Positions 4,502-60,038 of a DNA stretch of 64,000 nucleotides are shown here, piece by piece. Origin of the DNA: Macrostomum lignano. Taxonomy: Eukaryota. Made by a program: the position numbers and the translations under genes. Position 1 is the first letter of the stretch, and each line of letters begins with the position of its first letter. The stretch spans positions 72,971 through 136,970 of the forward strand of contig NIVC01001401.1 of assembly GCA_002269645.1 (NCBI GenBank), given 5' to 3'. Below the pieces are notes generated by a model. It made no database searches and was not told where the DNA came from. It was given only the letters and a program-made list of their open reading frames with translations.

Positions 4502-4534
<33 letters not shown>

Positions 4535-5514: not shown

Positions 5515-5668
<154 letters not shown>

Positions 5669-6489
5669 CAAAACTATTGATAAAAAGTGTCTCAGTGTTT
5701 ATCGGAACTGGGGACTCCCGCTAAGGACACACAGATAGCCATGGAATCAGCAGCAAGCCAGTCCGAAAGCTGGGGGCTGAGAGGTTGCGTTTGCTCGGCC
5801 CCTCAAAGCCGGAGCCCTCTGCCCCTTTCTCAAGCTGCCTGCATGGCTTTCAAGTTTTGCTACAATCGGGCCCCGGCCAAGAATGAGAAGGTGGAGCAGC
5901 TCGCATAGCTAGCGGGGGTTTGGCAACCCCAATCCTGTTTTTTCTCTCCTCTCGTCTCCCCCTCACTCTCGCTTAGCTCCCGGGTGCACAGTTCTTCATA
6001 GCTGGCGCGGTGAAGAATGTAGCGAAAATTTCCGAATATTCGAATATTAGGAAGAAGAGAAGGAGGACTCGGCTATAGCTGTAACCCAGGCCGCGCCATT
6101 GCCGCCCGCTCTCGCGCAGGCCCCCGCACCCCCCCCAGCCCCCCCCCGATTCTTCCTCCGAACGCAAGCGATGTTTTTGATACAATTGGTGAACCTGCAA
6201 CTGCAGGCCTAAAATACGCCTCTCTCTATCCTGTGTGCGTTTGTTTCTCCTTTCTCTGTCTCTGTCTAGCTCTAATCCTTCGCTTTGTTATACTTGGTCT
6301 TCTATTTGCGCTTGCTTCAGAGCCTATCACATTGGTGCTATGCATCCTTCATGTTTTAGCTCAGGCTTGATGACTTTCCCACGAAATTTTCTTTTGTAAC
6401 TTATCTAACAGCATACACTGTGTCCGGTCTGTAATTACTGGCCTCCAGAATCCTATGCGGGGCCAGCTGGGTGCTTATTTGATTATAAG

Positions 6490-8054: not shown

Positions 8055-8580
8055 GAAGCAGGAGAGGAGAGGGGGAGGGAGGGAGACGAAGATAGAGAAT
8101 AGGATGAGAGAAAGGGAGAGTGAGAGGGAGATGGAGAGTGAGAGTGAGAGGGAGAGTGAGAGGAAGAAGAGTGAGAGGGAGAGTGAGAAGGAGAGGGAGA
8201 ATGAGAGAGAATGGGAGTGAGAGGGAGAGTGAGGGAAAGATGGAGAGGGATAGTGAAAGGAAGAGGGAGAGGGAGAAGGAGAGAGAGAGGGAGAGAGTTA
8301 GTGGGAGGGAGAGTGAGAAGGAGAAGGAGAGTGAGAGGAAGATGGAGAGGGATAATGAGAGGGAGAGTGGGGGAGATTCAGTGGAAGGGAGAGTGAAAGG
8401 GAGAGAGAGAAGGGGGAGAGTGAGTGGGAGAGTGAGAGTAGGAGGGAGAGTGAGAGTAGGAGGGAGAGTGAGAGGTAGATAGAGAGTAATAGTGAGAGGG
8501 GGAGTGAGAGGGAGAGAGAGGGGGAGAGAGAGTGAGAGTGTGAGAGAGTGAGAGGGCGAGTAAGTGGGAGGGGGAGTGAG
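8055..8580. repeat. GA-rich polypurine low-complexity tract
   Basis: Almost purely G/A on the plus strand. Confidence 0.9.
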
Positions 8581-8828
8581 AAAAACAAGGTACAAGTAAA
8601 GCCTAGAGGCTGGACTGGGTCGCGGTATTCGATATGTACCGTTGGTAACTTTTTGTTTTGAAGTAGGAAACTCCAAAGTACAAAATATCAAAACCAGTGC
8701 CCTTCGAACCCAAAGCAGCAAAGCATTGGTTGTTAGGCGTAAATTTGCACCTTTTCTAGCGCGAGGACCCACATATGGAGGTGATGATTTTGTTTAAAAG
8801 CATTTGTAAAGCACCTCTACGAGTGGGA

Positions 8829-19414: not shown

Positions 19415-22400
19415 ATGTCCAATTCATTGGAATGCCTATCAGAAATTTATCATTTCGACTGCTTGCACAAAGGCAATCCATGCACTCTGACACTGAACCT
19501 GATAGACCAGTGCCTGTCCTGGCGTGCTCAGGCCCACTGCTCTGTCATCTCATCAGGTATGTCTGACATTTTTCTCAACATAAATTTTATAACTCAACAA
19601 GAATATTCTAGAGAAATTCCCTTCTCATGGTCCTGACTCCTGAAAGGGGTGGCAAACAGCTCAAGCAGTAACGCGTCTAACTCTCGCGCTCAACGTACTG
19701 GGTTCGAATCCCTGTTCGGTCAATGAGAGTCAAGGCCAAAGTGCATTACATGTGTTCTGTATAGTACAATACATGTTTACTTAATTAACACGAATAGGTA
19801 AGGCTGCCCGTAGCTCTCATTGAACTTGGCGCACTCAACCCAGTCAGTCACTGTAAGTATGCGCGAAAAGTGCTCGCGTACTCGCAGTCGCAGCTATTTT
19901 CTGCATAAGCGCAGAAAACTCTAGCTATCACGTACACTGTACGGGTGCAGAAATCTAGCGCTCTCTCTCTTTTTCTTCTTTTCTCCGCCTGTCTTCCCAC
20001 TTTGCCTGTCTGACTATTTTAACCAAGCTGTTTAGGCTGTCTATCTGCAATAAGCCAAGTGCGTAGATATTGCTAGAATTCTCTAGAGGGTACATTCAAG
20101 AATGCTTATCTTTTCTCTTTACTCCACGTCTCACTTGAGTTTAGCCTAAATTAAATATAAAAAATGATAAAATAATTATTGATTTCACGTTGCAGCCACT
20201 CTACATGTACTATAGTTGTACGCTGGGGAGTTGTTAATTTGGCTGAACGTTGCTTATCAATTTTTCTTATCTGTTTTCGATCTTGCCTCTTACTGATAGT
20301 ACGGACAAACGTGCTGACTGAAAGGCTGTTTTATCTCGCTTAGATTTTCACTTTAGTTCTTTTAGCTAAGTGAAAACGCAGGCACTATTCTCCGTGTGTT
20401 GCCTAAACCAGTAGCTTAGTGTAGGAATTTCAATTAGTTTAATTGTGTGTCTTACAGATTCACACAAGTTCGGTTGATCTGGCTTAGGACTTACTTAAAG
20501 CCTTGTGTATCGTGTTCTTGTATTGCTTATATTGGAGTCATGCTACCCAGAGTGACGCCCAGAAATATTAACTAGTTAAAACTCTCAGCCTTAGCCAGTT
20601 ATTTTTTGGCATGGCAAGTTGGCAACTATTGTTTTTTCCACACCCGCTCCCTATGATGTACACACTAAGGGTCACAAAATCCCGTATTCTGTCAATCCCG
20701 GGATCCCGGGATAGTGACCCCTAGTACACACCCATCTCAGTGATGTACACACCCGCTCCCTATGATGTACACCGCTACCCGCTCCGCCAGGCGCGCAGTA
20801 CCAGCTGGACGACATTCTGCACGCTCAGGCCACTCCGGATATTTCGGGCAGCCAAAAGCAGCAGCAGAAGCAGCAACAGCAGCAGCAGCAGAAGCAACAG
20901 CTCGAGCTGGTGGCGGCTGTACAAACCGGCGACTGCCGTTGGCGGCTTCAGCAAATCCAGCTGACCGGCCTGTCTGACTGCTCCAGCCTGCTGGCTTTGC
21001 TGACGCCCCAGCTGGAGGCCGCGGCTGGTCGGCACAGGCGGCCGCGCTCCCTGCTGGTGTTCGTCAACCCGGTGAGCGGAGGCGGCGGCGCGGTGCGCCT
21101 CTGCGACCGGCTGCTGCGGCCGGCGCTGCGGCAGTGCCGGGTAGCCGCGCGGTTCGTGCACACGGAACGGCGACACCACGCCAAGGACTTTCTGCTGCAA
21201 GAGAAGCTGCAGTCGTTTGACGGGTTGGTTTCTTTCCTGTTGGACTGCTTGCCACTGAAATGCTACTAGCAGTAGGCTAAGCAGAGAATTTTCTTTTTTT
21301 CGGTCTGTGGAAATCGAAGTGCTTGACACTGAGCTGTCACACACAGCTCAGAAATTATTTGTTGTTTTCCCATTAATTACACTTCCGAGGCTCATTAGTT
21401 GCTGGACCAGCCTCACAGATCCTCAGTTTCTGGGCCAGCCTCAGAGTTTCAGTTTCTGGGCCAGCCTCACAGAGTTTCAGTTTCTGGGCCAGCCTCACAG
21501 AGTTTCAGTTTCTGGGCCAGCCTCACAGAGTTTCAGTTTCTGGGCCAGCCTCACAGAGTTTCAGTTTCTGGGCCAGCCTCACAGAGTTTCAGTTTCTGGG
21601 CCAGCCTCAGAGAGTTTCAGTTTCTGGGCCAGCCTCACAGAGTTTCAGTTTCTGGGCCAGCCTCACAGAGTTTCAGTTTCTGGGCCAGCCTCACAGAGTT
21701 TCAGTTTCTGGGCCAGCCTCACAGAGTTTCAGTTTCTGGGCCAGCCTCACAGAGTTTCAGTTTCTGGGCCAGCCTCACAGAGTTTCAGTTTCTGGGCCAG
21801 CCTCACAGAGTTTCAGTTTCTGGGCCAGCCTCACAGAGTTTCAGTTTCTGGGCCAGCCTCACAAAGTTTCAGTTTCTGGGCCAGCCTCACAGAGTTTCAG
21901 TTTCTGGGCCAGCCTCACAGAGTTTCAGTTTCTGGGCCAGCCTCACAGAGTTTCAGTTTCTGGGCCAGCCTCACAGAGTTTCAGTTTCTGGGCCAGCCTC
22001 ACAGAGTTTCAGTTTCTGGGCCAGCCTCACAGATACTCAGTTGCTGGGCCGCCGCCAATCTCACAGATCCTCATACTGGATATGAACTGGAAAAGCATAT
22101 CATACATGTAAATCAATTTTTTTGAAATTGTGATTGATAATATATTCTGAAAGTCATTATCATAGTTCAAATAGCTATGATAATAGAGTTTTTGCTGACA
22201 TAAAGGCCCAAAGCAAAAATCCAATAAAATAAACAGTAGTTCACAAAAAGCATATTTTACAGAAAAGAAGATTGAATAAAATTTAAAATGTGCAGGCATC
22301 GGATGGGGCACATCTGTTCGAGCTTAGCTTAATCCTTCAATTTTTTATTTCTATTCCAGCATTGTTGGGGTCGGCGGCGACGGCATTTTGTCTGAGCTGT

Positions 22401-24761
22401 TCCACGGCCTGCTGCTGCGCAAGCGACTGGACGAAGGCCTGACTGCTCACACTGTTGACGATCCTGAGCTGCGGCCCGATCACACGATTGGCATTGTGCC
22501 AGCTGGTAAATGCGAGCTCCCAGCAAGCGCTGGGGGGGGGGGTTTCCTTCCCGCAGTCATTGGCGGTTCCCATCCAAGGATAGTTGGGGAATCTTTTTTA
22601 CCAATCATTAGGGATTCCTCTTTTACAGTCATTAGGGATTCCCCTTTTATATTATTTAGGGATTCCCCTTTTACAATAATTAGGGATTCCCTTTTACAGT
22701 CATTAAGGATTCCCTTTTTATAATCATTAGGGATTCCCCTTTTAAATCATTAGGGATTTCCCTTTCACAGTCATTAGAGATTCCCATTTTTACAGTCATC
22801 AAGGATTCCCTTTTGAGAGTTACTAGGGATTCCCCTTTTACAGATATTAGGGATTTTAGTTTCATAGTCATTAGAGATTCCCATTTTTACAGTCATTAAG
22901 GATTCCCCTTTTACAATCATTAGGGATTCCCCATTTGACAGTCATTAGGGATTCCCTTCCAAAAATCATTTTGGATTCCCTTCCAAAAGTCGTTAGGGAT
23001 TCCTTTTTATATTCATTAGAGATTCCTTTTTATAGCCGTAGGGATTCCCTTTTTACAGTCATTTACCTTCTATAAGGTTTTTATTTCCCTTCAGGAGTTT
23101 CTTTCCCAACAATTATTTGGATTTCCCTTCAACAATCATTGGGATTCCCGTTCAAAAATCATTAGGAATTCCCATACGATCATTAAGGATTCCCCGCCAA
23201 TAATAGTTCGCAAAAAGTAAACTGCAATCGCCCCTCGCTCCCTGCAGGCAGCACGGACACCGTAGTCCACAGCATCAACGGTACAAGCGACGCTCTCACC
23301 GCCATTGTTCAAATAATTCTCGGCCGACGCGTCGCCATGGACATGGCGTCCGTGTACTCCGATTCCGGCCAGTTCCTGACGTATAATATCAGCCTGCTGG
23401 GCTACGGCTATTTTGGCGAGGTGGCCAGGTCCAGCGAGCCGCTGCGCTGGATGGGGCCGGCCAGGTACGACCTGGTGGGAGCTCACCGGCTGCTCAACCT
23501 ACGATCTCACGCTCTGGAGATCAGCTTTTTGGAGGCCGACGGCAGGTGAGCTGCGGGTTGATCTGCGGTTTTGGGGACTGCATCACCAATTCTCCCGGGG
23601 TATTTTGGGCTACTTCACCGATTCTCCATGGGTATTTTGGGCTACTTCACCAATTCTCCATGGGTATTTTGGGCTGCCTCACCGATTCTCCATGGGGGTA
23701 TTTTGGGCTACCTCACCGATTCTTTATGGGGGTATGTTGGGCTGCCTCACCGATTCTCCATGGGGATATTTTGGGCTGCCTCACCGATTCTCCATGGGGG
23801 TATTTTGGGCTGCCTCACCAATTCTCCATGGGGGTATTTTGGGCTGCCTCACCAATTCTCCATGGGGGTATTTTGGGCTGCCTCACCGATTCTCCATGGG
23901 GATATTTTGGGCTGCCTCACCGATTCTCCATGGGGGTATTTTGGGCTACCCCACCGATTCTCCATGGGGGTATGTTGGGCTACCTCACCGATTCTCCATG
24001 GGGGTATTTTGGGCTACCTCACCGATTCTCCATGGGGTATTTTGGGCTACTTTACTAATACTCCCTGGCGGGGAATTTTGGGCTACTTCACCGATTCTCC
24101 ATGGGGGTATGTTGGGCTACCTCACCGATTCTCCATGGGGGTATTTTGGGCTACCTCACCGATTCTCCATGGGGTATTTTGGGCTACTTTACTAATTCTC
24201 CCTGGCGGGGAATTTTGGGCTACCTCACCGATTCTCCGTGGGGGGTATTTTAGATAGATTTTGATGCTATTAAAATTCTGCAGGGTATTTTGCGATGCCA
24301 TTAAAAGTCCATAGATAGCTATGTTGCATCGCCATTCCAATTCAGATGCCACGCCGTGTGCACTCGCGACTGCTCAGTCTGCTCATCGGACGCGCTCGCC
24401 GAGTGCGCCCCGGAGGCGAAGGAGCAGCAACGGCGGCAGCTCCGCACCGTCACCGGTCGCTTCGTCGCCGTCAACAGCTTCCTGATGCCCTGCCGATCGA
24501 CTAAGAGCGCCGCCGGTGCCGTGCCGTTTGCCCACCTGGGCGACGGCTGCACCGACCTGGTGCTGGTGCGCGACTGCAGCAAGGCGGAGTTCCTGCGCCA
24601 CCTGTACCGCGTCAGCAGCTGCCCCGTGCGCTTGTCCACCGCCGCGGCCGGCGCCTCCGCTATCGACGACTCGCTGCCGCCGCCTCCGCCTACGCCACCC
24701 GCACCTGTGGAGCCACAGTTCCAGCTCGACTGCGTGCAGGTTGGAAGACTGCTCTGATGGC

Positions 24762-30758: not shown

Positions 30759-33700
30759 TCAGCCATCGTCCAGGAGTCCGATCTTTCTGCCGAACGATTT
30801 CACCTTGTCCTTGGCCTCCTCCTGCATCAGCTGGAAGCACATGGCGATCATGGCCAGGCCGAACAGCAGGTACAGGCCGCAGGTGATTGGCTTGGCCTCG
30901 TCAGTCCAGGACGACTCTTGCATGCCGGGCACGAAGTCGCCCAGCCCGATGGTTGTCAGGGTGATGAACACGAAATAGACGGAGTCCATGAAGCCCCACT
31001 GCTCCCAGGAGTAGAACAGCACCGCCCCGGTCAGGATGTAGATGCAGAACACCGTCAGGGTCAGCCAGACCGGCACGCGGATTACTTCGCCGAGATCCTC
31101 GACGCTGCTGACTGGCGTCGAGGCGGCGTAGGAGCTGGCGGCCCGCCCGGCGGTTCCCACCGACGCCGGCGGTAGCACGCACAGGTCCAGCGTCTGCCCG
31201 GTGCTCGGGTCGGCCAGCTGGAAGATTCGTCGACGCGACATCATCGCTGGCGGCGATCCACCGTTGCCGCCCAGCGTCGCCTCCGCCGCCCCGTGTCGCC
31301 CGCCGGCCGTCGTAGCCGTCGACAGACCGCTCCGTCCGCTGCCGCCGCCGCCGCCGCGCCGGACTGTAGCGCCGCTACGGTTGCTCCGTCGGGACCGGTA
31401 GCGGCTGGAGATGGGCATGATCTCCGACAGCTGGTCAAAGGCGCGCACCCGGCCCCGCCGACTGCGACTGCTGATGGCCTCGTGATGGCGGGCCAGCCGG
31501 CGCATCCGACGTCTGCGCCACAGACGGAGGCAGCAGTGCTGGTAGCAGAGGCGAAACACGTCAGCCAGGAAGGAGCCGAGGTTGTGCAGGCATAGCAGCA
31601 TCAGCGGGATGCCCACCATGGCGTAGAAGATGGTGCACAGCCGGCCGGCAACCGTTTTGGGCGCCACGTGGCCGTAGCCTGCGATGGCAGCCAGTTTGGG
31701 ACCAATTTTATACAATTAATTAAAATTTGCACTACTTGTAGTAGCAATAGCCCTTTGTGTTTGAATGCGTCCGTAAGTAGTCCGTAAATAGTAAGAAATC
31801 TGCCATTCTGTTCCTTCAGTGTCCTTGAATCTGCCTCTCCGCTCCCTCAGTGTCCTTGAATCTACCTCTCCGCTCCCTCAGTGTCCTTGAATCTGCCTCT
31901 CCGCTCCCTCAGTGTCCTTGAATCTGCCTCTCCGCTCCCTCAGTGTCCTTGAATCTGCCTCTCCGCTCCCTCAGTGTCCTTGAATCTACCTCTCCGCTCC
32001 CTCAGTGTCCTTGAATCTGCCTCTCCCTTCCCTCAGTGTCCTTGAATCTGCCTCTCCCTTCCCTCAGTGTCCTTGAATCTGCCTCTCCGCTCCCTCAGTG
32101 TCCTTGAATCGGCCTCTCCGCTCCCTCAGTGTCCTTGAATCTGCCTCTCCGCTCCCTCAGTGTCCTTGAATCTACCTCTCCGCTCCCTCAGTGTCCTTGA
32201 ATCTGCCTCTCCCTTCCCTCAGTGTCCTTGAATCTACCTCTCCGCTCCCTCAGTGTCATTGAACTGAGTGCCCTTGAATCCTCCAATAACCAACTCGACC
32301 TGTTTCCTTTTCTTAGAAACAGTTTGAAATTCGTGGCCCCTTCTCTCTCTGACCATTCAACCGTGAGCGAACCATGAGAGGCCAAAACTAGCGCAGAACA
32401 CGGGTACTGCATGCTGGTTTTGCATCGGGACGAGATTTGAAGGACAACGGCAAACTGCAGAACGCACAGCTCTGGTTTGTCCATGCCCCCCCCCCCCAAT
32501 CCCGCTGGGATGCGGCCCCGCGCAACTTGGGTTTTACCGATAGTTGCACAGCTAGCCAGAATGTTGGCTTTCCTCTTAATTAAGATCGAATCCGTCTTGA
32601 CTGTCGGACCTGTTTTCTTGGAATTGGCCAATTTAGCTTGAAAATCTACGACTGAGGCCAGGACTAAACGATAACAGCAGTCCAAAATCCAATAGTAGAA
32701 AAACGGAGGGGGGCATTGTAGTGAATTTCTTAGAAATAAAATTCTCAGCAAGGACTACTCAAGTACAAGGACGGGAAATCTCGTTTCTTGGAAAAAAATT
32801 TTCCAAGAAAATCTTTTTTCAGCAGGAGGCAGACCCAATGTTCATCTTTTGATATGTTGTGCCTTTGTTATAGCTCTATTGATATTCATAAAGCTTAATG
32901 TTTTATTCTACGTACATTTGTACATGTCCTGTGCCTGAAATTCATTAAAATTGCATGGCTCGGCTCATTGGTTTTATGAATCTATTTTGTCATTCTTAGC
33001 TGACTGTGTAACAGTATTTGTAACAGAGATGATAAAATGGATTCATGAAACCAAGGATTCGAGCTGTGCCATGCATTTTTACGCTCGTATGATTTATAGG
33101 CTCAATAGCCCTCGACAATTTAATCTCGCAATTGGGAAGACTTTCAAACCAGAGGAGATATGGAAGAGACAGACACAGAGAAAGAGAAAAATGATGATCA
33201 TAAAAGAACGGTGATCCGCCTCCCGAAGAGGTCATCAGTGTGAAGGCATGGCTGACCAATCTGGCTGGCACTGCAGGCAACTGAGCGAGGTAACTGCACT
33301 GATCGATACCATTTGCTTGGCTAAGTCTGTGCACAATCATCTGCAGTTTCGCTTCAGAAATCTTTAATTGAAAGCATACAGATTACACTGGGACCAATTT
33401 TTTTGGGGCTTACTCAGCTGGTTAACCGATGCGAATTCAAAAATGGGATTTCCCCAATTGCTTGCAGGCAATTATTGCAGATTGTAATTGAAGTCCACTC
33501 TGCCGTGTGCAGGGTCATGATATAGGGTATGGGCTCGTATTCTACACGCATTTCAGCTCGTGATGACACTTCCTAGGCAATAATATAGATGCATAGATTT
33601 ATAGATGCATGGATATATAGATTGATATAGATGTATAGATGCGCAACGCATCTGAAGGCTGCGTACGCCTGTTCACTCCAAGGACTGGGGAGGGGGGGGT

Positions 33701-36700
33701 CGCCACACACACCCTCAATTACCCCAGCTAATGTCTTGCTCAAGGACACAAATTGTTCCGAGGTGGCTCGAGAATCGAACCCCCGACCTTTCAGTCGTGA
33801 GTCCGACGCTCACCCCTAGATAGATGCATATACCTAGAAGTATAGATGCATGGATTGCATGGATACATAAACTCACAGACGCATAGATATGCCAGAAAGA
33901 TCAGTTGAGACATCAGTGCCCTGGCAACCCATAAAAATTTAATGATCGCTCTGATTAACACAGAAAACCGATTAGCCAAGTTAGACGTCCTGCGAATTGG
34001 ATGCACAACTTCGGAGGGGGACAGCCAGAACTCCCAGGATGAACGACATCGTCTCACAGCAAAAGTACACTATGCGCTCTTATTATAAACTTCCCACCGC
34101 CAATTCGCAAAGCAGGACTAGAAGAGAGAGGGGGAAATAAGAAGAGGAGAGACTAGATCACGGAGCCAGGAGAGTGGAGAGACTAGATCACGGAGCCAGG
34201 AGAGTGGAAAGACTAGATCACAGAGTCAGGAGAGTGGAAAGACTAAATCACGGAGCCAGAAGAGTGGAGAGACTAGATCACCGAGTCAGAATAGTTGAGA
34301 GATTAGATCACGGAGTAAGAAGAGTGGAGAGACTAGATCGCAGAGCGAGATGAGTAGAGAGACTAGATCACAGAGCGAGATGAGTAGAGAGACTAGAACA
34401 CAGAGTCAGAAGAGTGGAGAGACTAGATCGCAGAGCGAGATGAGTAGAGAGACTAGATCACAGAGTCAGGAGTGTGGAGAGACTAGATCACAGAGTCAGG
34501 AGTGTGGAGAGACTAGAATCACGGAGTCAGAAGAGTGGAGAGATGAGATCACAGAGTCAGAAGCATGTATGGATACAAGTGGAAAATCAGTACATCAGCA
34601 ATAGTCACAAGCGCCGCTCACCAATGGTAGTCACTATGGTGATGGCGTACAGCAGAGCGCCAGGAAAAGTCCAGATAGTCTGATTGACCCCCGGCTTGTC
34701 CTCGTCTGGCCGACTCCAGCCCCGCATGGCGTAGCTGTAAACAGACTCCTCCAGTTTCAGCGCCCAGGTACGCAAAGTGGCCGAATAATTGTACCTGGCC
34801 ATCATAGTATTGGTGCCAACAGTGGAATAATCTTTACCGCCTTTGATTTTCTCTAGCAGAACTCGATTGTTCTCCAACTCGAGGTGGGCAACGCTGGTGA
34901 AATTGTAGAGGCTGGCTTGCATCAATTCTAAAGAGGCCTGCACCTGCAGCACCTGGCGCCGGTAGGCGGTTGAATGATTGAACAGCTGGAACACCTCCTC
35001 TCGGATGCGAGCCTTGGCCGAGTTGACAGCCTGCCGAAGCTCCTTGCGGATGCCGAGCTGAGATCTGGATTTTTTATAGAAACTTTGATTGCTGAAGATG
35101 AAGCATTTTCGGATTTTCAGTTGTCTGTTACTTATATATATATAGTAATTTTCTATTAATAATAAATGGACTATTGATCTAATAATCCGTTTTTTTACTC
35201 ATCGATTCATTCAGTCTCGTTTTTTCATGATCGATATTTTAATATTGATTTGTTAATATAGATTTTTTCTATCGATTTTTTAATCGATTTTATTGCTTAT
35301 ACGATGCTTATTCTCTTCTGTCTACGATTTAGGCTAGGGTTAGGGCTAAAGTTATGGTTAAGGTTAGGGTGTAGGTAAGAGTTTAGGTTAGGATTTAGGT
35401 TATAGGGTTTAGTTTAGGGTTTAGGTTAGGGTGTAGGTTAGCGTTTAGGTTATAGGGTTTAGGGTTAGGGTTTATTCTTGGGCAGTCAGTTTTCGCGGAC
35501 CGGCTTACTTATCCAGCTGCTGTCGGATCCTGTGCACCATGTTAGTGTAGTCCTGCATGCTGCGACCGGTGCTGCCAGACCGGTTGCCACCCGGATGCCC
35601 AAACGGGCACGGCGGACAGCTGATGTTGGACAGGAGGCTGCCGAGGACCCCCACCTGCGTCTCGATGCTGTCCTCATGCTGGGTGAAGTCCCCCTGAAGC
35701 TGGTGCAACAGCTGCGAATTTGCGTCGCCAACTTCGCGCACGGCGTCGGCCAGTCGGAGCCGACTCGAACTCAGCATCTGGCTGATGTTGAGCAGCTTCT
35801 TGTAGGACTCATCTGCCATGTCTTCTAGAACGTGAAACAACTGCTCAAAGTCCGACTTGAGCTCCTGGATCATCTCGACGACTGGTTGGGTCATGTTGCC
35901 GCTGTGGGGTTGGGCAGTTGTAGCTAGATGAGTAATCTACAGACTAGATAAGTAATATACAAGCTATATATGAGTAATCTACAAGCTATATATGAGTAAT
36001 ATACAAGCTATATATGAGTAATCTACAAGCTATATATGAGTAATCTACAAGCTATATATGAGTAATCTACAAGCTATAGATGAGTAATCAACAAGCTAGA
36101 TGAGTAACATCCATAAATTTGGCCCAGAAAAACATTAACATGATTTCCTACCGCAATTAAAAGCAAGAATTTCTCTAATTGGTCGAGTTCAGTTAGTGCA
36201 CTGCAATTACAGTGGATTAGCAATGAGGTCTTGAGCGCGCATTACCAAGACCTCCCACTGCTGATCCTACGAGCTCAAGTGCAATACTAAGCGCCGCATC
36301 AGTGAATTATTCATGTTCACTGAGACTCTCCTCTCTTCCTTTGTTTGCCGAAAATCTGCTTGAGTGCGAATCGAATTTTAGTTTGTTTTTCCGGCACCTC
36401 TACTCCATCCCCGTTCTCTGCCGCAACAGCTGCTGGGGTTACTCAGTTAATTATTAATCTGAGGTTCACCCCGCATGGCTGGCTAGGAGGAAAGAATACA
36501 TTCCTGAGAAGCAGGGATCTTGCAACTGATGGTATGAAAGGCCTGAATAGAGTGCGTGTTCAACTTTCGAAGTTCTTGATTTTTGTAAGCTTCTATCGAT
36601 AGACAGGGTTGATTGTGTAGAGTCTGAGTTCTAGTCTCTTAGATCTAGTCTTTTAGATCTAGTCTCTCAGATCTAGTCTCTCAGATCTAGTCTCTCAGAT

Positions 36701-39700
36701 CTAGTCTCTCAAATCTAGCCTCTCAGATCTAGTCTCTCAGATGTAGTCTCTCAGATCTAGTCTTTCATATCAAGTCTCGTAGATTTAGTCTTTATTATCA
36801 AGTCTCACAGATTTAGTCTCCCTTATTTAGTCTAAGATCTATTCTCTCAGATTTAGACTCTCAGCTCTTAGTCTTTAGATCTAGTCTTTCTGATCTAGTC
36901 TCGTTTCCCAGATCTAGTCTCGCATAGTCTTCCTATTCTAGTCTATAGATCCAGTCTCTCTTGTCTCAATTTTTAGATCTATTCTTAAATAATCTAGTGG
37001 CTCAGATTATCAATATTTTCTTAGGGCAAGCTCTCAGCAGCTTCCTTCCCAGTCCCAGTCTCAAACCTCATATGAATTCTCGTCTGAGCCACGCTCTCCG
37101 TGTACATCCGATTGTCCATGACCGACCGATCGTGCTCCAGGTAGACGAACAGGTAAGCCCCTGACAGGGTGTAGCCAATCACCAGCAGGCACAGGCCGAT
37201 GTGCGAGAACAGGAAGGCCACGGAGGTCTTCAGGCAGGAGACGCAGCGACGCCTTCGTCGCTTCCACTTCGACACCTTCGGCCGAGTGGGCGGCTTGCCG
37301 TCGTTCTGCTGCTGCTGCTGCTGATTTTTCTGCTTCTCGGGCGAGTCTGTCGCCTGGTCGGCGGCGGCCTTCTTGCCATCGGTGTCTGCCGCCTCTGCGA
37401 GCGGCGGCAGGGTTTAAGCTGGACTGAAGGGTCACATCTTTTTCTTTCCTTTTTCCGAATCCATTCACGAATCAATTCACGAATCCATTCACGAATCCAT
37501 TCACGAATCCATTCACGAATCCATTCACGAATCAATTCACGAATCCCTTCACGCATCCATTCACGAATCCATTCACGAATCCATTCACGAATCCATTCAC
37601 GAATCCATTCACGAATCCATTCACGAATCCATTCACGAATACATTCACGAATCCATTCACAAATCCATTCACGAATCCATTCACGAATCCATTCACGAAT
37701 CCATTCACGCATCCATTTACGAATCCATTCACGAATCCATTCACGAATCCATTCACGAATCCATTCACGAATCCATTTACGAATCCATTCACGAATCCAT
37801 TTACGAATCCATTTACGAATCCATTCACGAATCCATTTATGAATCCATTCACGAATCCATTCACGAATCCATTCACGAATCCATTCACGAATCCATTCAC
37901 GAATCCATTTATGAATCCATTCACGAATCCATTTATGAATCCATTCACGAATCCATTCACGAATCCATTCACGAATCCATTCACGAATCCATTTACGAAT
38001 CTCTTCTTGAATCTCGATTTATCTTCACATCCTTCATCCCTCCCTTCAACTCCCTGTCAATCTGACTCTCACTGTCATCTTCAGTCTCCGCCGCAGCCGC
38101 AGACGTCACCCCGCCGCCGGCGGCCAGTGGCGCCAGCAGCAGCTTCGTCTGCGCATCCTGACGCCTCGTTCGCACCGGCCTTTCCGGCGGCGAACCCGCA
38201 GCAGCAGCAGCTGCGGCAGCGGCTGACGCAGGCAAATTGTCGTAGTTGGACGTTCGCTGGCCGGCCGTCGCTCGCAGCTCCTCGATGTCGTCTTCGCTCT
38301 GCATCGCGTCGCTGTAGGTTGTGAAGGCGCTGAATGGGCGAGGCCGGTAATGCAGATTTCTCAGGACCAGAGCCTGGCACTCGCGTTCGGTGAGCAGGCC
38401 GCCTGTCAGGTTGTCGTCCTCGATGCCCTTCAACGCGGCCCCGACTGGCTCTGCACGGTCGGTGTGCAGAGACAAAGGAAAAGTGCATCCGTGTAGAGGA
38501 TAACGGAGATGGCTAATATATGAAGCGAAGCAGGACTGCATGATCGCTGGTTTATTGGCGGGCAACCCGTGTGGTCTACTTGAGGGACGGCCCCAGCCAA
38601 GGACACCCAGAACCAGAATTTGGAGTAGAAACTTTTCTCCCAGATCTTCTGTCGAATCCCGGTCTCGTTCCCGATCCCGATCCCGATCCCGATCCCGATC
38701 CCGATCCCGATCCCGATCCCGATCCCGATCCCGATCCCGATCCCGATCCCGATCCCTTGGGATAAAGGGATACCAGTTTCATTTAGTGTCAAAGAACTGG
38801 CCTGGAAAGAAGAGTTGCCACTCCAAATTCTAGTTTTTCGGTCTCCTTGGCCCAGCTAAGGGGATAATATCTTAGCGCGACCCCGGGATGGACTGTCGGA
38901 TGGGATGCCGCAAAAGTTAACAACTTTTGGCGAATCTGCTTTACTGAAGCACTGAAGCAGACAAGACAGGCAAAGCAGTTAAAATTGTTAGTAGGGGGCA
39001 AAACTTCCGCATTTCTGCTCTCCGCGTCCAGAAACAGTGCTGTGAGCCCAAGCAGGGTGGCAGCAGCGGTGCAGATTGGTTTGACCAGTTTGCGCTTGGA
39101 CAGACCCCAGCATGTGGTCGGAGCCTGGACCATCTAAGCTAGGCTTGGGTCTGAAGATATATCCATGATTTAACATTACCTATCATCAAAGGCTATTCAT
39201 GGAGATCTACAACTAGTAGAATATCTGGAGTGGAAACTGACATCCCTAAAGCAGATTCTAGATCCGTTTGGAATAGCGTAGTTGAAAATCAGCTTATTCC
39301 ATTGGCGTCATGCACAAACGCAGTTAGTTTAGTTTCGTTTATAGTTTATCATATTTGTTTATTAATTCCTCTTTATCACCTTTGGCGGCCAAAAAAACGT
39401 TTAAATTTTTTAATTGCTACGAACCGACGACATTTGCTGATGAAAACTTGAGGGTCTCCATTGAGCGATCAGCTGTGCCAATCAAACCTAAGTGTCACGG
39501 TGACTCTAGTGTTCACTTTTGTACCCGCAGATAGTTCTGTTCTGCGCATATACTTCTGAGAGCCAATTAAAACTAAAATAAAAGTTGGGGAACACTTTCA
39601 AAGTTGCTTTTGAACTACTTAAAGTAGCTTAAGAATTCAGCTACCTCTATGTATAAATATATAGTCTATGGTCGGCTCCGTGAGAGCTGGGGAAGAGAAT

Positions 39701-40587
39701 GGGGACAGGGAGAGAGACTGGGGATGAGCTGGCACGGTCGCTGGAATCCATAGTCTATGGTCGGCTCCGTGAGAGCTGGGGAAGAGAATGGGGACAGGGA
39801 GAGAGACTGGGGATGAGCTGGCACGGTCGCTGGAATCCATAGTCTATGGTCGGCTCCGTGAGAGCTGGGGAAGAGAATGGGGACAGGGAGAGAGACTGCG
39901 GATGAGCTGGCACAATCGCTGGAATCCAGTCTATGGTCGGCTCCGTGAGGGCTGGGGGAGAATGGGGACAGGGAGAGAGACTGGGGATGAGCTGGCACAG
40001 TCGCTGGAATCCAGTCTATGGAGTAACAATGGTGAGCCTCCCATAGCTACGCAAAAGTGAGTTCTGTCACCTTCAGCTGCACTCGGATTCGCCAGAGAAT
40101 TCACGCCGCTTCTACACCCATCGGAGACGCCGTTTTGCGTCGGACCGCCGCCGCCTGACGCAGCGGCAACCAGCAGGGCGGCGGCGTCTGAGCCCGTAGC
40201 CGCTGCCGCCGCTGCCGCAGCCCCCTCGTCTTCTTCATCGTCGTGCGCGATCGGCGCTTTCGTTTCTAGCGAGTGCAGCCCGACTGTGGCCGCGGCGGTG
40301 GTCGCCACCGCTGCAGCTAGGAAGCTGTGCTGCTGCTGATGATGTTGCTGCTGATGTCTCTGATCTTTGCGTCGGTGCTTGGACTCGCCCCGTCTACTCC
40401 GACGACCGGAAGCAGCGGCGTCTCGATGCGGCTTAGCCGCCGGGGTCGCCGACGTTTCTGCGAGGGTCACCGACGTCATTGCCATTGCTGTGGCGGCCTC
40501 GGCACCACGGGCGCGCCGCTTTGCTTCCGCGTCCGCCTTTCGACTGTTGTCGGCGTCGTTTTTCGCGGCGCTGTCGCTTGTTACCAT
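30759..40587 (-). CDS. KCNK: Two-pore-domain (K2P/TWK, KCNK18-like) potassium channel, ~990 aa
   Basis: Exons 40587-40071, 38450-38073, 37394-37067 (M1 [24 protein letters not shown]), 35901-35509, 35064-34622 (P1 [17 protein letters not shown]), 31678-30759 (GYGHVAP, M2, M3, P2 [13 protein letters not shown]4, stop). Total 2979 nt, in frame. The two 5' exons are less certain than the core. Confidence 0.9.
31815..32258. repeat. 31-bp minisatellite CAGTGTCCTTGAATCTGCCTCTCCGCTCCCT in K2P intron
   Basis: About 14 copies. Confidence 0.95.
33643..33819 (-). mobile_element. tRNA-derived SINE with CORE-like central motif, in K2P intron
   Basis: Minus strand reads CTAGGGGTGAGCGTCGGACTCACGACTGAAAGGTCGGGGGTTCGATTCTCG (B-box) followed by TGTGTCCTTGAGCAAGACATT; flanked by ATAGATGC on both sides. 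Confidence 0.6.
34148..34560. repeat. 30-bp minisatellite GAGTGGAGAGACTAGATCACAGAGTCAGAA in K2P intron
   Basis: About 13 degenerate copies. Confidence 0.9.
35328..35472. repeat. Degenerate TTAGGG-like hexamer repeat in K2P intron
   Basis: TTAGGG/TTAGGT/TTTAGG units. Confidence 0.75.
35928..36105. repeat. 22-bp minisatellite ATATGAGTAATCTACAAGCTAT
   Basis: About 8 copies. Confidence 0.9.
36622..36960. repeat. 14-bp minisatellite TCTCAGATCTAGTC
   Basis: Degenerate tandem copies. Confidence 0.85.
37456..38000. repeat. 12-bp minisatellite ATCCATTCACGA in K2P intron
   Basis: About 45 copies. Confidence 0.96.
38689..38756. repeat. (CCCGAT)n hexamer repeat
   Basis: About 11 perfect copies. Confidence 0.95.
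39661..40021 (-). repeat. ~89-bp repeat x4 derived from the coe acceptor and HLH exon, in K2P intron 1
   Basis: Unit nearly identical to 54721-54960; minus strand encodes [13 protein letters not shown]. Confidence 0.93.
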
Positions 40588-41064
40588 GGTAACTGGCGGG
40601 CTGCGCGCAGGGTAAGGATGTAAGTCGGTGGAGGAAACTATCAATACACGTTTCTTCATTACAAACACACTACTTTCAGTAAAGGTTGAAGAAAATGAAA
40701 GCGCGGAGAATTAATAATCTAGAAGAGAAGGCATCAAGGTGAGCGAGCAGCTGATGAAGAAGTCCTGTTTACATTCATTTTCGAACATTGCAGATTTGGT
40801 ACCAGCTATGAATAATTGGTAATCTCGTTAACTTGTAAATTCCATGCACTTTCATTTTCTATCGAACACGAATATCCAAGTCCGATGGAAAGAGTGTTCT
40901 TAGTCCTACCCCAGTTAACACAGAAGGCACTTTATATTGTCGCGAAGACTGCCTTTGCAGTTCTTCACTGTCGCGTTCTTGTAAAAGCATTCTCCATAGG
41001 GTTGGGATCAGGATCAAGAACAGGGGTTGGGTTCGAGATTGGGATCAGGATCAGGACCTGAACT

Positions 41065-43996: not shown

Positions 43997-44324
43997 GGTT
44001 TGGGTTAGATTTAGTTTTCGGTTTATGTTTAGGGTAAGGTTTATGGTAAGGTTTAGGTTTAGGTTTTGGTTTAGGCTTTGGGTTAGGGTTAGGTTTAGGG
44101 TAAGGTTTAAGTTTAGGTTTAGGGTTTGGTTTTGGTTTAGGGTTAGGTTTTGGTTTAGGGTTAGGTTTTGGTTTAGGGTTAGGTTTTGGTTTAGGGTGAA
44201 GTTTTGGTTTAGGTTTAGGTTTAGGTTTAGCTTTAGCTTTAGGGTTAGGTTTAGGTTTAGGTTTAGGTTTAGCGTTAGGTTTAGGGTTAGGTTTTGGGTT
44301 AGGTTTAGGGTTAGTTAGGGTTAG
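43997..44324. repeat. Degenerate TTAGGG-like hexamer repeat
   Basis: GGTTTA/GGGTTA/GGTTTT units. Confidence 0.8.
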
Positions 44325-44700
44325 GACACTTCGCTCTTCTGGCTTCCAGTCCAGGTGACTTACAGTGGTCCCTGTTGGTAGTATAATTTCTCTCTTAAAA
44401 TCGCCTCCATTTACGGGCCCCAGGTGGAAAATCGCCGGCACTGCTTCGCCTGGGGGTTTGAAGCTAAGAAAAAGAATTTCCACATTTTTATTGCATGGAT
44501 ATTGTGCATTAATCCGTAATTCGAATCACCAAGCGAAACTAAACGCACGCCTTCGGTGCACCTCCGGGGGCGGTTGATGAGGGAAGCTGCAGTTGAAAGC
44601 ATTTTGACGGCCAAAGCTTGACGGTTATCTTTTTCTCTCTCATGTTGCCAATTCTTTCGTTTCTTTCTTTTTCTTTTCCTTTCTGCGTTTGCAGCGGTAT

Positions 44701-53694: not shown

Positions 53695-56644
53695 TCATTT
53701 TACTGGCGAAGCGATGGAGCCGCCGCCAGGGTAAGTCGGCCCCGAGCTGCTCAGAGCGAACGGGTTGACTGAGGTGAAGGGCAGAGAGGACATGCCTGCA
53801 AAATGTTTAGAAAGTGGTGTGCTACATACAATGTACACTACTAACAAATCATCAATAAGTAGCAACAAAAGAGTTTTGCTGGCTAAAACTTACGCGCTCC
53901 GTGCAGAAAGTCCTGACCGGGCCCAGTAACCGCCGGCATGCCCATTGGTACGCCCATCTGCATGCCCATCTGCATGCCCATCTGCATTCCCATACTGCCT
54001 GAGGCGGCAGTAGGATAGGAGGCTGCGGCGGCTGCTGCGGCGGCTGCGGCGGCTGCGGCGGCGGCTGCAGCTGTGCCGTTGTCGTTGTTATTTCCAACTT
54101 CCGATCCGCCGTTTGAAGCCAACGTCTGGTGGTGGTGGTGCTGCTGCTGCTGCTGAAGATCAGCATATCCCGGATGCTGCACTGCATGATGGTGATGATG
54201 CTGCTGCTGCTGCTGCTGTTGCTGAAGATGCTGCTGTTGCTGATGCTGCTGGTGATGGTGAGGCAGCTGACCCTGTCTGGACCCACCAACTGGCCGGTTG
54301 TACTCGTCCGTCGAAGCTGCAGCGGCGGCAGCTGCGGCAGCGGCCGCCATAGCCGAGGATGACCACTGACCGGCCACCGAGTCAGCAGATGAGACCGCGA
54401 GCTGGCTGGTGTAAGACTGCGGAATGGTGTCGATTCTTGACAGTGAACTTTTATTGCAATAAAATCGGATATTAATGCGGAGCCAAGGTATTTTTGCGAA
54501 CTTACATGGAAGCTGTTGTTGTTGGCCGCCTGCATTGACGGACTGAGTGGCGGTGGAGGCGGCGCCTGCTGGTGATGAATTTGCTGCTGTTGCTGCTGCG
54601 CCTGCTGCATCTGCTGGTGCTGCCTCGGCATGGTGTACAGAGCTTCGGCCACGTCTGCGGCTCGCTTTAGAATAATCTCTTTCGGCAGTCGGTCTGGGTC
54701 GCCCGGGTGTCTCGGTATGAGCTTGCACAGTCGCTGGAATCCATAGTCTATGGTCGGCTCCGTGAGGGCTGGGGGAGAGAATGGGGGGCAGGGAGAGAGA
54801 CTGCGTATGAGCTGGCATAGTCGCTGGAATCCATAGTCTATGGTCGGCTCCGTGAGGGCTGGGGGAGAGAATGGGGACAGGGAGAGAGACTGCGGATGAG
54901 CTGGCATAGTCGCTTTAATCCATAGTCTATGGTCGGCTCCATGAGGGCTGGGGGAGAGAATGTGTACTGAAGCCTTCAACCCTGGCCAATACAACTTAAC
55001 TACACAGCAATTTACATGTATATGTTAAGACATACGAGCGCCAACCCATCAAAGCTACTTTTAGTAGAGCTACGAGACTACGAAAGCAGCACAAACTGCA
55101 AATTCTTACAAGTGTAAACAAAGCGACCGGGCGCGTTCTTGCAAAACTGCTTGGACTTGTAGGACAGGGTCACTTCCACTACGCCTGGTATGTGACGCGG
55201 TGGAGTCTGCACTCGGATGGCATGTGACGTAATCATCTGCCAAAGGAGTGCGAAAGGTCCCGTTAAAATACTGTTAAATGAGAGAGCTACATGAAAATAA
55301 ATTGAACTCACCTCGCTCCAGACCAGCATGGTGCCAAATACCACCTGCAATCCGTCGAAGAAGTTCTCTCCCACAATGATGACTGTGGAGCCGCCGTTAG
55401 TCCAGCCTTCGCTGGGGCAAACAGCTTTGATGCTTGGCGTTGCTACAGGGCGGTTGTCATGGTGAGAAAGATTTTTCAGCACAAAGGCGTATATACTGGA
55501 GTACGTGAGTCCTTATTAATCTTAGCAATTTCTATTGATGGCTTTTACTAGCTGCGCAATTCCCCACTAGCCCTTATCTAAGCTGAGCAATTTCCCACTA
55601 GTTCTTATCACAGCTGAGCAATGCCCCACTAGCCCTTATCTAAGCTGAGCAATGCCCCACTAGCCCTTATCTAAGCTGAGCAATTTCCCACTAGTTCTTA
55701 TCTAAGCTGAGCAATGCCCCACTAGCCCTTATCTAAGCTGAGCAATGCCCCACTAGCCCTTATCTAAGCTGAGCAATGCCCCACTAGCCCTTATCTAAGC
55801 TGCGCAATTCCCCACTAGCCCTTATCTAAGCTGAGCAATTTCCCACTAGTTCTTATCTAAGCTGAGCAATGCCCCACTAGCCCTTATCTAAGCTGAGCAA
55901 TGCCCCACTAGCCCTTATCTAAGCTGAGCAATTTCCCACTAGTTCTTATCTAAGCTGAGCAATGCCCCACTAGCCCTTATCTAAGCTGAGCAATTTCCCA
56001 CTAGCCCTTATCTAAGCTGAGCAATTTCCCACTAGTTCTTATCTAAGCTGAGCAATGCCCCACTAGCCCTTATCTAAGCTGAGCAATGCCCCACTAGCCC
56101 TTATCTAAGCTGAGCAATGCCCCACTAGCCCTTATCTAAGCTGCGCAATTCCCCACTAGCCCTTATCTAAGCTGAGCAATTTCCCACTAGTTCTTATCTA
56201 AGCTGAGCAATGCCCCACTAGCCCTTATCTAAGCTGAGCAATGCCCCACTAGCCCTTATCTAAGCTGAGCAATTTCCCACTAGTTCTTATCTAAGCTGAG
56301 CAATGCCCCACTAGCCCTTATCTAAGCTGAGCAATTTCCCACTAGCCCTTATCTAAACTGAGCAATTCCCCACTAGCCCTAATCTAAGCCGAATAAAAAA
56401 TTCCCCTCGAATTCCCCCTCCAGACCCCGAGCACCCACCTCCGTCGCTTGGATCTATCCTGCGGGCCCGCCGGCCGTGCTTGCTGTTGTTGTGGACGAAC
56501 ATGTTGTCCGACACGGCCAGCAACTGGCCGGACAGGAGGCTCGGCGAGGCCGACACGGCCACCTGGAACCGGCGCATGTCCCTCGGATTGCCGGCGTTCT
56601 TCAAACAGTTCTGGTTGCACTTCATGAAGAACTTCAGGAAGAAG
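53695..56644 (-). CDS. coe: COE/EBF (collier) transcription factor, 3' part: end of DNA-binding domain, IPT/TIG, HLH and C-terminal tail
   Basis: Exons 56644-56439 ([27 protein letters not shown]), 55442-55312, 55236-55110 ([23 protein letters not shown]), 54768-54506 ([13 protein letters not shown]...[21 protein letters not shown]), 54416-53894, 53795-53695 ([13 protein letters not shown]...*). All phases match. N-terminal DBD exons were not found in the window. Confidence 0.96.
54721..54960 (-). repeat. Tandem triplication (90/89-bp unit) of the coe acceptor and 5' half of the HLH exon
   Basis: Three copies of ...ctctcccccAG|ccctcacggagccgaccatagactatgg. Confidence 0.93.
55548..56388. repeat. 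31-bp minisatellite CCCTTATCTAAGCTGAGCAATGCCCCACTAG in coe intron
   Basis: About 27 copies. Confidence 0.96.
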
Positions 56645-57497: not shown

Positions 57498-60038
57498 GAT
57501 AGAGCAGAGAGAGATGGAGAGAGAGGGAGATAGAGAGAGATGGAGAGAGAGGGAGATGGAGAGAGAGGGAGATAGAGAGAGATGGAGAGAGAGGGAGATG
57601 AAGAGAGAGGGAGATAGAGAGAGATGGAGAGAGAGGGAGATAGAGAGAGATGAAGAGAGAGGGAGATAGAGAGAAATGGAGATAGAGAGAGATGGAGATA
57701 GAGAGAGATGGAGATAGAGAGAGATGGAGATAGAGAGAGATGGAGAGAGAGGGAGATAGAGAGAGATGAAGAGAGAGGGAGATAGAGAGAGATGGAGATA
57801 GAGAGAGATGAAGAGAGAGGGAGATGGAGAGAGAGGGAGATAGAGAGAGATGGAGAGAGAGGGAGATGGAGAGAGATGAAGAGAGAGGGAGATGGAGAGA
57901 GAGGGAGATAGAGAGAGATGGAGAGAGAGGGAGATGAAGAGAGAGGGAGATAGAGAGAGATGGAGAGAGAGGGAGATGGAGAGAGAGGGAGATAGAGAGA
58001 GATGGAGAGAGAGGGAGATGAAGAGAGAGATGGAGATAGAGAGAGATGGAGAGAGAGGGAGATGGAGACAGATGGAGATAGAGAGAGATGGAGAGAGAGG
58101 GAGATGGAGAGAGAGAGAGAGGGAGATAGAGAGAGATGGAGATAGAGAGAGATGGAGAGAGAGGGAGATAGAGAGAGATGAAGAGAGAGGGAGATAGAGA
58201 GAGATGGAGATAGAGAGAGATGAAGATAGAGAGAGATGGAGAGAGAGGGAGATAGAGAGAGATGGAGAGAGAGGGAGATGAAGAGAGAGGGAGATAGAGA
58301 GAGATGGAGAGAGAGGGAGATAGAGAGAGATGGAGATAGAGAGAGATGGAGATAGAGAGAGATGGAGATAGAGAGAGATGGAGATAGAGAGAGATGGAGA
58401 TAGAGAGAGATGGAGAGAGAGGGAGATGGAGAGAGATGAAGAGAGAGGGAGATAGAGAGAGATGGAGATAGAGAGAGATGAAGAGAGAGGGAGATAGAGA
58501 GAGATGGAGAGAGAGGGAGATAGAGAGAGATGAAGAGAGAGGGAGATAGAGAGAGATGGAGATAGAGAGAGATGGAAATAGAGAGAGATGGAGATAGAGA
58601 GAGATGGAGAGAGAGGGAGATGGAGAGAGATGAAGAGAGAGGGAGATAGAGAGAGATGGAGATAGAGAGAGATGAAGAGAGAGGGAGATGGAGAGAGAGG
58701 GAGATAGAGAGAGATGGAGAGAGAGGGAGATGGAGAGAGATGAAGAGAGAGGGAGATAGAGAGAGATGGAGATAGAGAGAGATGAAGAGAGAGGGAGATG
58801 GAGAGAGAGGGAGATAGAGAGAGATGGAGAGAGAGGGAGATGGAGAGAGATGGAGAGAGAGGGAGATAGAGAGAGATGGAGATAGAGAGAGATGGAGAGA
58901 GAGGGAGATGGAGAGAGATGGAGAGAGAGGGAGATAGAGAGAGAGGGAGATGGAGAGAGAGGGGGATAGAGAGAGATGGAGAGAGATGGAGAGAGAGGGA
59001 GATGGAGAGAGAGGGAGATGGAGAGAGAGGGAGATGGAGAGAGAGGGAGATAGAGAGAGATGAAGAGAGAGGGGGATAGAGAGAGATGGAGATAGAGAGA
59101 GATGGAGAGAGAGGGAGATAGAGAGAGATGGAGAGAGAGGGAGATAGAGAGAGATGGAGATAGAGAGAGATGGAGAGAGAGGGAGATGGAGAGAGATGGA
59201 GATAGAGAGAGATGGAGAGAGAGGGAGATGGAGAGAGAGGGAGATAGAGAGAGATGGAGATAGAGAGAGATGAAGAGAGAGGGAGATAGAGAGAGATGGA
59301 GATAGAGAGAGATGGAGAGAGAGGGAGATGGAGATAGAGAGAGATGGAGAGAGAGGGAGATGGAGAGAGATGAAGAGAGAGGGGGATAGAGAGAGATGAA
59401 GAGAGAGGGAGATAGAGAGAGAGGGAGATGGAGAGAGATGGAGAGAGAGGGAGATGGAGAGAGAGGGAGATGGAGAGAGATGAAGAGAGAGGGGGATAGA
59501 GAGAGATCAAGAGAGAGGGAGATGGAGAGAGATGAAGAGAGAGGGAGATAGAGAGAGAGGGAGATGGAGAGAGATGAAGAGAGAGGGAGATAGAGAGAGA
59601 GGGAGATTGAGAGAGATCAAGAGAGAGGGAGATGGAGAGAGAAATGGAGAGAGAGGGAGATAGAGAGAAATGGAGAGAGAGGGAGATGGAGAGAGAGATG
59701 AAGAGAGAGGGAGATAGAGAGAGATGGAGAGAGAGGGAGATGGAGAGAGATGAAGAGAGAGGGGGATAGAGAGAGATCAAGAGAGAGGGAGATGGAGAGA
59801 GAAATGGAGAGAGAGGGAGATGGAGAGAGAAATTTAGAGAGAGGGAGATAGAGAGAAATGGAGAGAGAGGGAGATGGAGAGAGAGAGAGATGAAGAGAGA
59901 GGGAGATAGAGAGAGATGGAGAGAGAGGGAGATGGAGAGAGAGATCAAGAGAGAGGGAGATGGAGAGAGAGGGAGATAGAGAGAGATGGAGAGAGAGGGG
60001 ATAGAGAGAGATGAGGAGAGAGGGAGAGGGAATATAGA
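57498..60038. repeat. ~2.5-kb GA-rich satellite (GAGAGAGGGAGATAGAGAGAGATG-type units)
   Basis: Polypurine tandem array; source of ORF 57483..60041. Confidence 0.96.

Follow-up and report, generated by a model that had tools for sequence, protein, structure and literature searches.

The closest described relatives of the repeats reported here are the 'mirage' minisatellites of amphioxus, known from Adh3, troponin C, the globin genes BflGb6 and BflGb9 and PGBD5. These are head-to-tail arrays with units in the range of 10-160 bp, each unit joining the 3' end of an intron to the 5' part of the next exon, and splicing of the host genes is unchanged by them. Related is a 37-bp variable-number tandem repeat (VNTR) in intron 7 of human F7, which spans the exon 7 donor and presents several identical pseudo splice sites that remain silent. 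In a model due to Rogers, as applied to mirages, internal tandem duplication leads to intron gain or exon creation. Here we describe, in a 64,000-nucleotide stretch of Macrostomum lignano contig NIVC01001401.1 (the window), an exon-boundary array in coe, a COE/EBF transcription factor gene (array B), and a second array of the same unit in a neighbouring potassium (K⁺) channel gene (array A). The exon-boundary array is of an already known kind; array A is an ectopic derivative of a sort not described in the mirage papers.

Both arrays have the same orientation, their host genes lie on the minus strand, and unit anatomy and coordinates below are read along that strand. The two arrays are:

39661-40021, minus strand: array A, ectopic copy of the coe exon-boundary repeat (Tandem Repeats Finder, BLASTN and unit alignment)
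54713-54969, minus strand: array B, in-situ exon-boundary ('mirage'-type) array in coe (Tandem Repeats Finder and unit alignment)

Tandem Repeats Finder gave array A a period of 89 nucleotides (nt) with 4.1 copies and 96% matches, and the array B locus (54715-54962) the same period with 2.8 copies and 94% matches. Array A has four units of 85-89 nt and array B three, with 14.7 kb between the arrays. When 38661-41021, which includes 1 kb of flank on each side of array A, was compared with the window by BLASTN, the two arrays aligned with 91-92% identity across as much as 247 nt (E 1e-96); the match does not extend past the edges of the arrays, whose flanks are not alike. Two probes, of 30 nt from the exon part and 26 nt from the filler, matched nowhere in the 64-kb window but at A and B; shuffled sequence would be expected to yield 0 matches. 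In a self-comparison of the whole window the A/B unit was the sole complex-unit repeat present at two places, and the remaining shared arrays were (GTCT)n, purine-rich or telomere-like. The observation of one repeat at two loci is confirmed, and the preliminary description of this DNA, which had reported four near-identical units at 39661-40021 matching the coe locus on the same strand, is borne out in both respects.

Array B is made up of the following units, in which, as in all sequences below, a slash marks a junction:

54969-54893, minus strand: B1, 77 nt, without the 12-nt filler, continuous with unique intron
54892-54804, minus strand: B2, 89 nt
54803-54713, minus strand: B3, with the true polypyrimidine tract, AG and exon start

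Unique intron sequence ...GGTTGAAGGCTT directly precedes the array. B1 reads CAG-TACAC-ATTCTCTCCCCCAG/CCCTCATGG...CTCATCCG (77 nt) and B2 reads CAG-TCTCTCTCCCTG-TCCCC-ATTCTCTCCCCCAG/CCCTCACGG...CTCATACG (89 nt), while B3 has the intron part of B2, followed by the true exon CCCTCACGG...GTGCAAGCTCATACCG, which runs on into AGACACCCGGGC... A unit therefore consists of the last 22-34 nt of the intron and the first 55 nt of the HLH exon. This agrees with the earlier proposal that the unit derives from coe: it holds the acceptor and the exon start, and the exon is matched by COE homologues carrying Pfam COE1_HLH. The earlier unit count was right in placing the repeat at both loci, and it is corrected here for array B, which comprises exactly three whole units (54969-54713), the outermost minus 12 nt of filler; on its outer side the array passes into native intron, and on its inner side stand the acceptor and exon that are in use.

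The pyrimidine filler CAGTCTCTCTCCCTGTCCCC, previously taken to be common to the units, is present in all A units, B2 and B3 and absent from B1. Within array B it is confined to the two unit-unit junctions, the pattern expected if a segment was duplicated in place, gained a few nucleotides where the copies met and was then duplicated once more. Because B1 merges into unique intron without filler, B3 is continuous with a conserved exon and there are exactly three units, array B is native to coe. Judged from these edges, its in-situ origin at the coe exon boundary, as had been suggested, is shown. The B2 and B3 acceptors are 90 nt apart, not 89. By arithmetic only, splicing at the B2 acceptor would place 90 in-frame nt (30 residues without a stop) ahead of the normal HLH start, and splicing at the B1 acceptor would bring in 179 nt, in which a TAG stop is met.

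At the sequence level array B has the features that define a mirage minisatellite, a kinship that the preliminary description had missed, and it would be a new example outside amphioxus. Like the amphioxus arrays, it is head-to-tail with a unit of intron 3' end and next exon's 5' part, its authentic copy stands at the array edge, and its spare copies have an intact AG; the B and A units (77-90 nt) fall inside the reported size range. Homogenised inner and divergent edge units, as seen here, are also a feature of the BflGb6 mirage. The present host differs in not being an amphioxus, the best matches of its COE and K⁺ channel proteins being in molluscs, nemerteans and flatworms, and in that a copy has also left the gene for a neighbouring one, a step absent from the mirage papers. 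The F7 VNTR likewise has a first element spanning an exon boundary and a multiplied set of pseudo splice sites, but it repeats a 5' splice site, whereas the present arrays repeat a 3' splice site, and no ectopic copy has been described for F7.

The coe exons that frame array B, and the intron that holds it, are:

54506-54768, minus strand: coe HLH exon (acceptor CCCCCAG/, first exon base 54768, phase 1; exon end ...TTCCAT/GTAAGT)
54769-55109, minus strand: coe intron from IPT/TIG exon b to the HLH exon, 341 nt, of which 201 nt are array B
55110-55239, minus strand: coe IPT/TIG exon b (donor ACTT/GTAAGA)
55449-55315, minus strand: other coe IPT/TIG exon (alignment to COE homologues)
56449-56643, minus strand: coe DNA-binding-domain exon (COE homologue alignment), with more 5' exons beyond the window

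In tblastn, homologues with PF16422, PF01833 and PF16423 aligned at 56643-56449, 55449-55114 and 54781-54623. The COE protein of the window is 75-77% identical to gastropod, chiton and nemertean proteins, and the start of the HLH exon agrees with mollusc and other COE proteins. Searches with the COE and K⁺ channel proteins returned distant relatives only, a pattern that suggests a spiralian without near kin in the collections. On these alignments, the unit donor is a COE/EBF transcription factor gene, in which the exon that starts the HLH lies beside IPT/TIG and DNA-binding exons.

Several further observations concern coe. Its C-terminal exon (53936-54269) contains tandem coding repeats, namely (GMQM)n at 53936-53998 (a 12-nt unit in ~5 copies), poly-Ala at 54021-54073 and poly-Gln/His at 54173-54269. 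A comparison of window 54506-55239 with L002, a contig from ENA ERZ26222911 (7112-7546), revealed that intron positions are not the same: L002 has no intron at FVY/SLTEP and one after ...RLPK, and in the window the first is present and the second absent. A phase-1 intron ahead of LTEPTIDY is common in other animals, as judged from open reading frame (ORF) calls that start in the intron sequence immediately ahead of it. Contigs L001 and L002 were set aside for the boundary comparison, as they come from different organisms and L002 is without the relevant intron. In one public gene model, P0112 (Mytilus galloprovincialis 'early B-cell factor', 718 aa), COE is present twice head to tail, residues ~1-366 recurring at 368-718; the doubling is due either to faulty annotation or to a genuine tandem duplication in the assembly concerned. 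P0112 was rejected as a close relative, its very high score being due to the doubled gene model.

Array A was resolved into five segments:

40021-39984, minus strand: A0, partial, starts CATAGAC
39983-39899, minus strand: A1, 85 nt
39898-39810, minus strand: A2, 89 nt, identical to A3
39809-39721, minus strand: A3, 89 nt, identical to A2
39720-39661, minus strand: A4, partial, ends CATAGACTAT

The figure of four units given previously holds as a total; in anatomy, two partial and three full units amount to four units plus 9-10 nt of terminal redundancy, with CATAGACT[AT] at both ends. We assume that this redundancy is microhomology native to the target. Unique sequence ...CACCATTGTTACTC precedes the array and unique ATATTTATACATAGAGG... 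comes after A4, and the junctions with the flanks read ...GTTACTC/CATAGAC and CATAGACTAT/ATATTTATAC. Both junctions are at the same point of the unit, and both breakpoints fall inside a 6+6 palindrome, CCATAG-A-CTATGG, which encodes T-I-D-Y-G; a role for the palindrome would be conjectural. Array A carries exon-boundary sequence but adjoins no exon, and is thus an ectopic derivative, not a mirage in place.

A scan for terminal inverted repeats (TIRs) and hairpin ends found no inverted repeats flanking array A, no poly-A was present at the array, and tblastn with COE homologues detected no further COE-coding similarity nearby, in line with the preliminary description. Exon-part and filler probes found no third copy of the unit within the window. 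The translated unit was not found outside COE proteins in a large protein collection, and exact patterns for the filler and the exon part gave no match to metagenome contigs in two scans. Rfam returned no structured RNA anywhere in the window. Three candidate explanations were rejected: transposon ends at array A, of which none was found; segmental duplication, there being no flank similarity between A and B; and hairpin-driven slippage, since the single-stranded unit folds no better than shuffles (z +0.55, +0.79, -1.72).

The direction of copying can be read from the units. The true exon has the codons TGC AAG (Cys-Lys), with a Lys that is conserved across COE proteins, while the spare units B1 and B2 and all A units have TGC CAG, a Lys-to-Gln change (column 80 of the unit alignment). 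This shared CAG, together with the junction filler in all A units, indicates that array A descends from the spare units of array B, neither in the reverse direction nor independently from the exon. By this unit polarity a B-to-A direction is shown, in agreement with the earlier view of copying from coe to the K⁺ channel gene. Compared with B2, A1 is changed at 3 of 85 sites and A2 at 6 of 89. A2, A3 and A4 are the same in sequence, which indicates recent local expansion or homogenisation.

The gene that holds array A lies downstream of coe on the same strand. Its relevant features are:

40071-40659, minus strand: GC-rich ORF with codon usage best in frame, putatively the K⁺ channel gene's first coding exon
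37996-38451, minus strand: putative exon 2 of the K⁺ channel gene, a coding-like ORF with an acceptor at 38451 that suits the donor at 40070 in phase
30762-31679, minus strand: K⁺ channel exon with the end of pore loop 1 (GYGHVAPKT) and pore domain 2 (Pfam Ion_trans_2, E 2.7e-28)
39639-39650, minus strand: candidate donor ATAGAG/GTAGCT, weak, G at 39644, just downstream of array A (arithmetic only)

Two Ion_trans_2 stretches (E 2.7e-28) with GYG and GLG filters, and best homologues among the TWK-18/KCNK18-like proteins of bivalves, trematodes, nemerteans and annelids, identify the host of array A by similarity as a two-pore-domain (K2P) potassium channel gene, and its pore exons are confirmed. 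The 5' end is assigned with more caution. The ORF at 40659-40071 scored +0.30 bits per codon for codon usage, against -0.15 to -0.47 for three control stretches in the same frame, and it has a good donor (CTGAAG/GTGACA, G at 40070, phase 1); a homology search gave no family match for it. Array A starts 49 nt downstream of this likely exon-1 donor and, under the two-exon model, would sit in a ~1.6-kb first coding intron. Codon usage and the phase-compatible donor and acceptor thus make it plausible that array A lies in the putative first intron of the K⁺ channel gene.

On balance, we lean towards an account in two linked events, a boundary duplication in coe and then a template-switch copy, in a minisatellite-prone genome. 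In coe, a segment of ~77 nt, in which the last ~22 nt of intron, with polypyrimidine tract and AG, are followed by 55 nt from the start of the HLH exon, would have been duplicated in tandem, the 12-nt pyrimidine filler forming at the duplication junction. A second duplication would have yielded three units, the innermost still providing the working acceptor and exon. Later, at least one spare, non-functional B unit would have been copied as DNA into the K⁺ channel gene, the next gene on the same strand, most likely by a microhomology-guided template switch in replication or break repair. A 3' end with CATAGAC as its last letters could have annealed to the coe array, been extended over a few units and come back via the same motif, so that the coe array was entered and left at CATAGACT(AT); the pre-insertion site would then be expected to read ...GTTACTCCATAGACT(AT)ATATTTATAC... 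Array A would finally have been enlarged locally, giving its three identical units. Template switching is the simplest reading of an insertion with no flank homology, inverted ends, poly-A or other coe sequence, in the same orientation as its source 14.7 kb away and with the same entry and exit point. The repeat load of the window, ~37% of which lies in tandem arrays, is supporting context.

Several points weigh against this account. The case for the mechanism comes from a single insertion and is thin, and with an 89-nt unit, chance alone would produce a terminal redundancy of 10 nt or less in ~11% of cases. The unit has no unusually stable single-stranded structure, leaving hairpin-induced stalling without support. 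Neutrality of the array is assumed, all A acceptors being still intact. The unit groupings are also mosaic, A going with B3 by column 76 but with B1 by column 88; inter-unit exchange or later conversion has blurred the finer history.

Of the proposal that the array was copied locally without a transposon, the copy 14.7 kb away and the lack of transposon hallmarks stand, and the route is only inferred: microhomology template switching or circle reinsertion would fit. In the latter, which we consider possible but unlikely, recombination between B units would have freed a small circle of one or more units, which, after amplification or opening, was inserted at a break in the K⁺ channel intron. 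Tandem arrays lend themselves ideally to the release of unit-length circles, the insertion in array A is near a whole number of units with no flanks copied, and satellite repeats do occur on extrachromosomal circular DNA (eccDNA), which has been suggested to spread them by reinserting. If an opened circle were simply end-joined, however, one would predict no terminal redundancy, or random ends. The model would not require the short distance and shared orientation, and sequence alone does not separate it from template switching. It is improbable that the unit belongs to a genome-wide dispersed repeat, for instance as the repeated core of a Helitron or non-autonomous transposon by which the coe boundary was once captured, with A and B only two among many copies. 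Non-autonomous elements with short satellite arrays as cores are known, but array B is seamless with native intron and exon, array A is without TIRs, hairpin or poly-A ends, no third copy exists in the 64 kb, and in the large protein collection the translated unit is confined to COE proteins. Insertion from an RNA template, in which reverse-transcribed unspliced coe pre-mRNA or read-through RNA patched a break in the downstream gene, seems very unlikely: while the orientation follows transcription, the target is downstream on the same strand and the copied piece holds intron sequence as pre-mRNA does, there is no poly-A and no sign of read-through, and the tandem spare units that served as the source are more simply explained by a DNA template. 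That the array at 39.7-40.0 kb is misplaced coe sequence we regard as the most doubtful of these possibilities. Assemblies are error-prone at tandem repeats, an amphioxus mirage was once mis-assembled, and no independent assembly matched when 10 window ORFs, including array-junction ones, were compared with a collection of 15 billion proteins, nor did metagenome contigs. Array A nonetheless is set apart from every B unit by fixed differences and indels of its own (columns 29, 37, 75 and 91, and two 2-nt deletions), and it has clean unique flanks on both sides within 361 nt, so that it was not built from B reads.

A separate question is whether the copied splice signals do anything. Each unit is a complete 3' splice-site module, with CTCAT ~40 nt upstream of a strong pyrimidine tract and CAG, and the earlier statement that four acceptors were brought into array A is correct in that all four units keep the branch-point-like CTCAT, the polypyrimidine tract and the CAG. 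A functional reading in the spirit of that description would have the copied acceptors used, the K⁺ channel gaining coe-derived exon sequence or regulated decoy splicing. For this reading speak the intact A acceptors, the phase-1 state of both host introns and a possible cassette: the last A acceptor (first exon base 39686) and the GTAGCT donor would delimit a hypothetical 42-nt, stop-free, phase 1-1 exon (arithmetic only). The candidate donor GTAGCT is weak, however, the A units are without a good donor, an in-frame stop-free cassette is expected by chance in ~1 in 6 cases, and the known mirages and the F7 VNTR leave splicing unchanged, so that we hold functional use to be quite improbable. 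Scarcely better is our estimate of a transposon-free, repeat-driven transfer of 3' splice-site modules into a neighbour's same-phase intron with at least one of them used. Were this true, the 42-nt cassette would add a coe-derived LTEPTIDY peptide to the K⁺ channel N-terminus, and short-range exon shuffling would be in progress, possibly as a general process in a minisatellite-rich genome. A repeat-mediated route to exon shuffling is not supported so far. We infer instead that both arrays are selectively neutral passengers, normally ignored by the splicing machinery, and the array copy is probably a harmless by-product of a very repeat-prone genome, doing nothing.

Movement of short tandem arrays to new sites is an established phenomenon. 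Short euchromatic arrays of Rsp-like and of 1.688 satellites in the Drosophila simulans clade, and of the Cast satellite in Tribolium, have spread to new loci, and the routes proposed for them are microhomology-mediated repair, template switching (fork stalling and template switching, FoSTeS; microhomology-mediated break-induced replication, MMBIR; synthesis-dependent strand annealing, SDSA) and eccDNA. As here, a short tandem array stands at a new locus without transposon ends, and the junctions of those arrays lie at short overlaps. Those satellites are abundant and non-coding, with many insertions, often into pre-existing arrays, whereas the present case is one event over 14.7 kb from a three-unit array at a coding exon boundary. 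Under the Rogers model, duplicated AG/GT segments are in principle recruitable; here any recruitment would be hypothetical, and the units have no good donor. If confirmed, the pair of arrays would be a clean example, of clear polarity, of an exon-boundary minisatellite that founded a second locus with no transposon involved. Such a case would be relevant to the way in which tandem arrays establish themselves at new sites, and it would show how other genes can receive ready-made splice signals from which cryptic exons or new introns might be made. For now it is one event, probably neutral, whose value is as a lead for a genome-wide survey.

The repeat load of the window is carried by ~40 mini- and microsatellite arrays (~37% of bases) with units of 4-42 nt and arrays of up to 2.5 kb. 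Nearly all have unique units, and they lie in introns and between genes; no ordinary interspersed repeats are shared inside the window. Intronic minisatellites accompany two kinase-like genes:

20766-24754, plus strand: exons of a diacylglycerol/sphingosine-kinase-like gene (motifs by eye, LLVFVNPVSGGG and GGDGILSE)
14169-16628, minus strand: exons of a tyrosine-kinase-like gene (Pfam PK_Tyr_Ser-Thr, E 2.4e-6)

Two ORFs with a DM domain (doublesex/mab-3 type) lie in tandem:

4030-4734, minus strand: DM-domain ORF (Pfam DM, E 1.7e-12)
5020-5673, minus strand: DM-domain ORF (Pfam DM, E 1.5e-14)

A (GTCT)n array extends into the second of these ORFs. Inspection by eye of the kinase and DM-domain exons revealed no exon-boundary arrays beside them. 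Interstitial telomere-like arrays (GGTTAGGGTTTA / GGTTTA) occur at 35338-35474 and 43997-44325, with ~74% mutual similarity. Purine-rich arrays (AGGGAG / AGAGAGAGGGAGATGG) occur at 8063-8581 and 57501-60031 and are ~72% similar; the larger, of 2.5 kb, lies in a coe intron upstream of the DNA-binding-domain exon.

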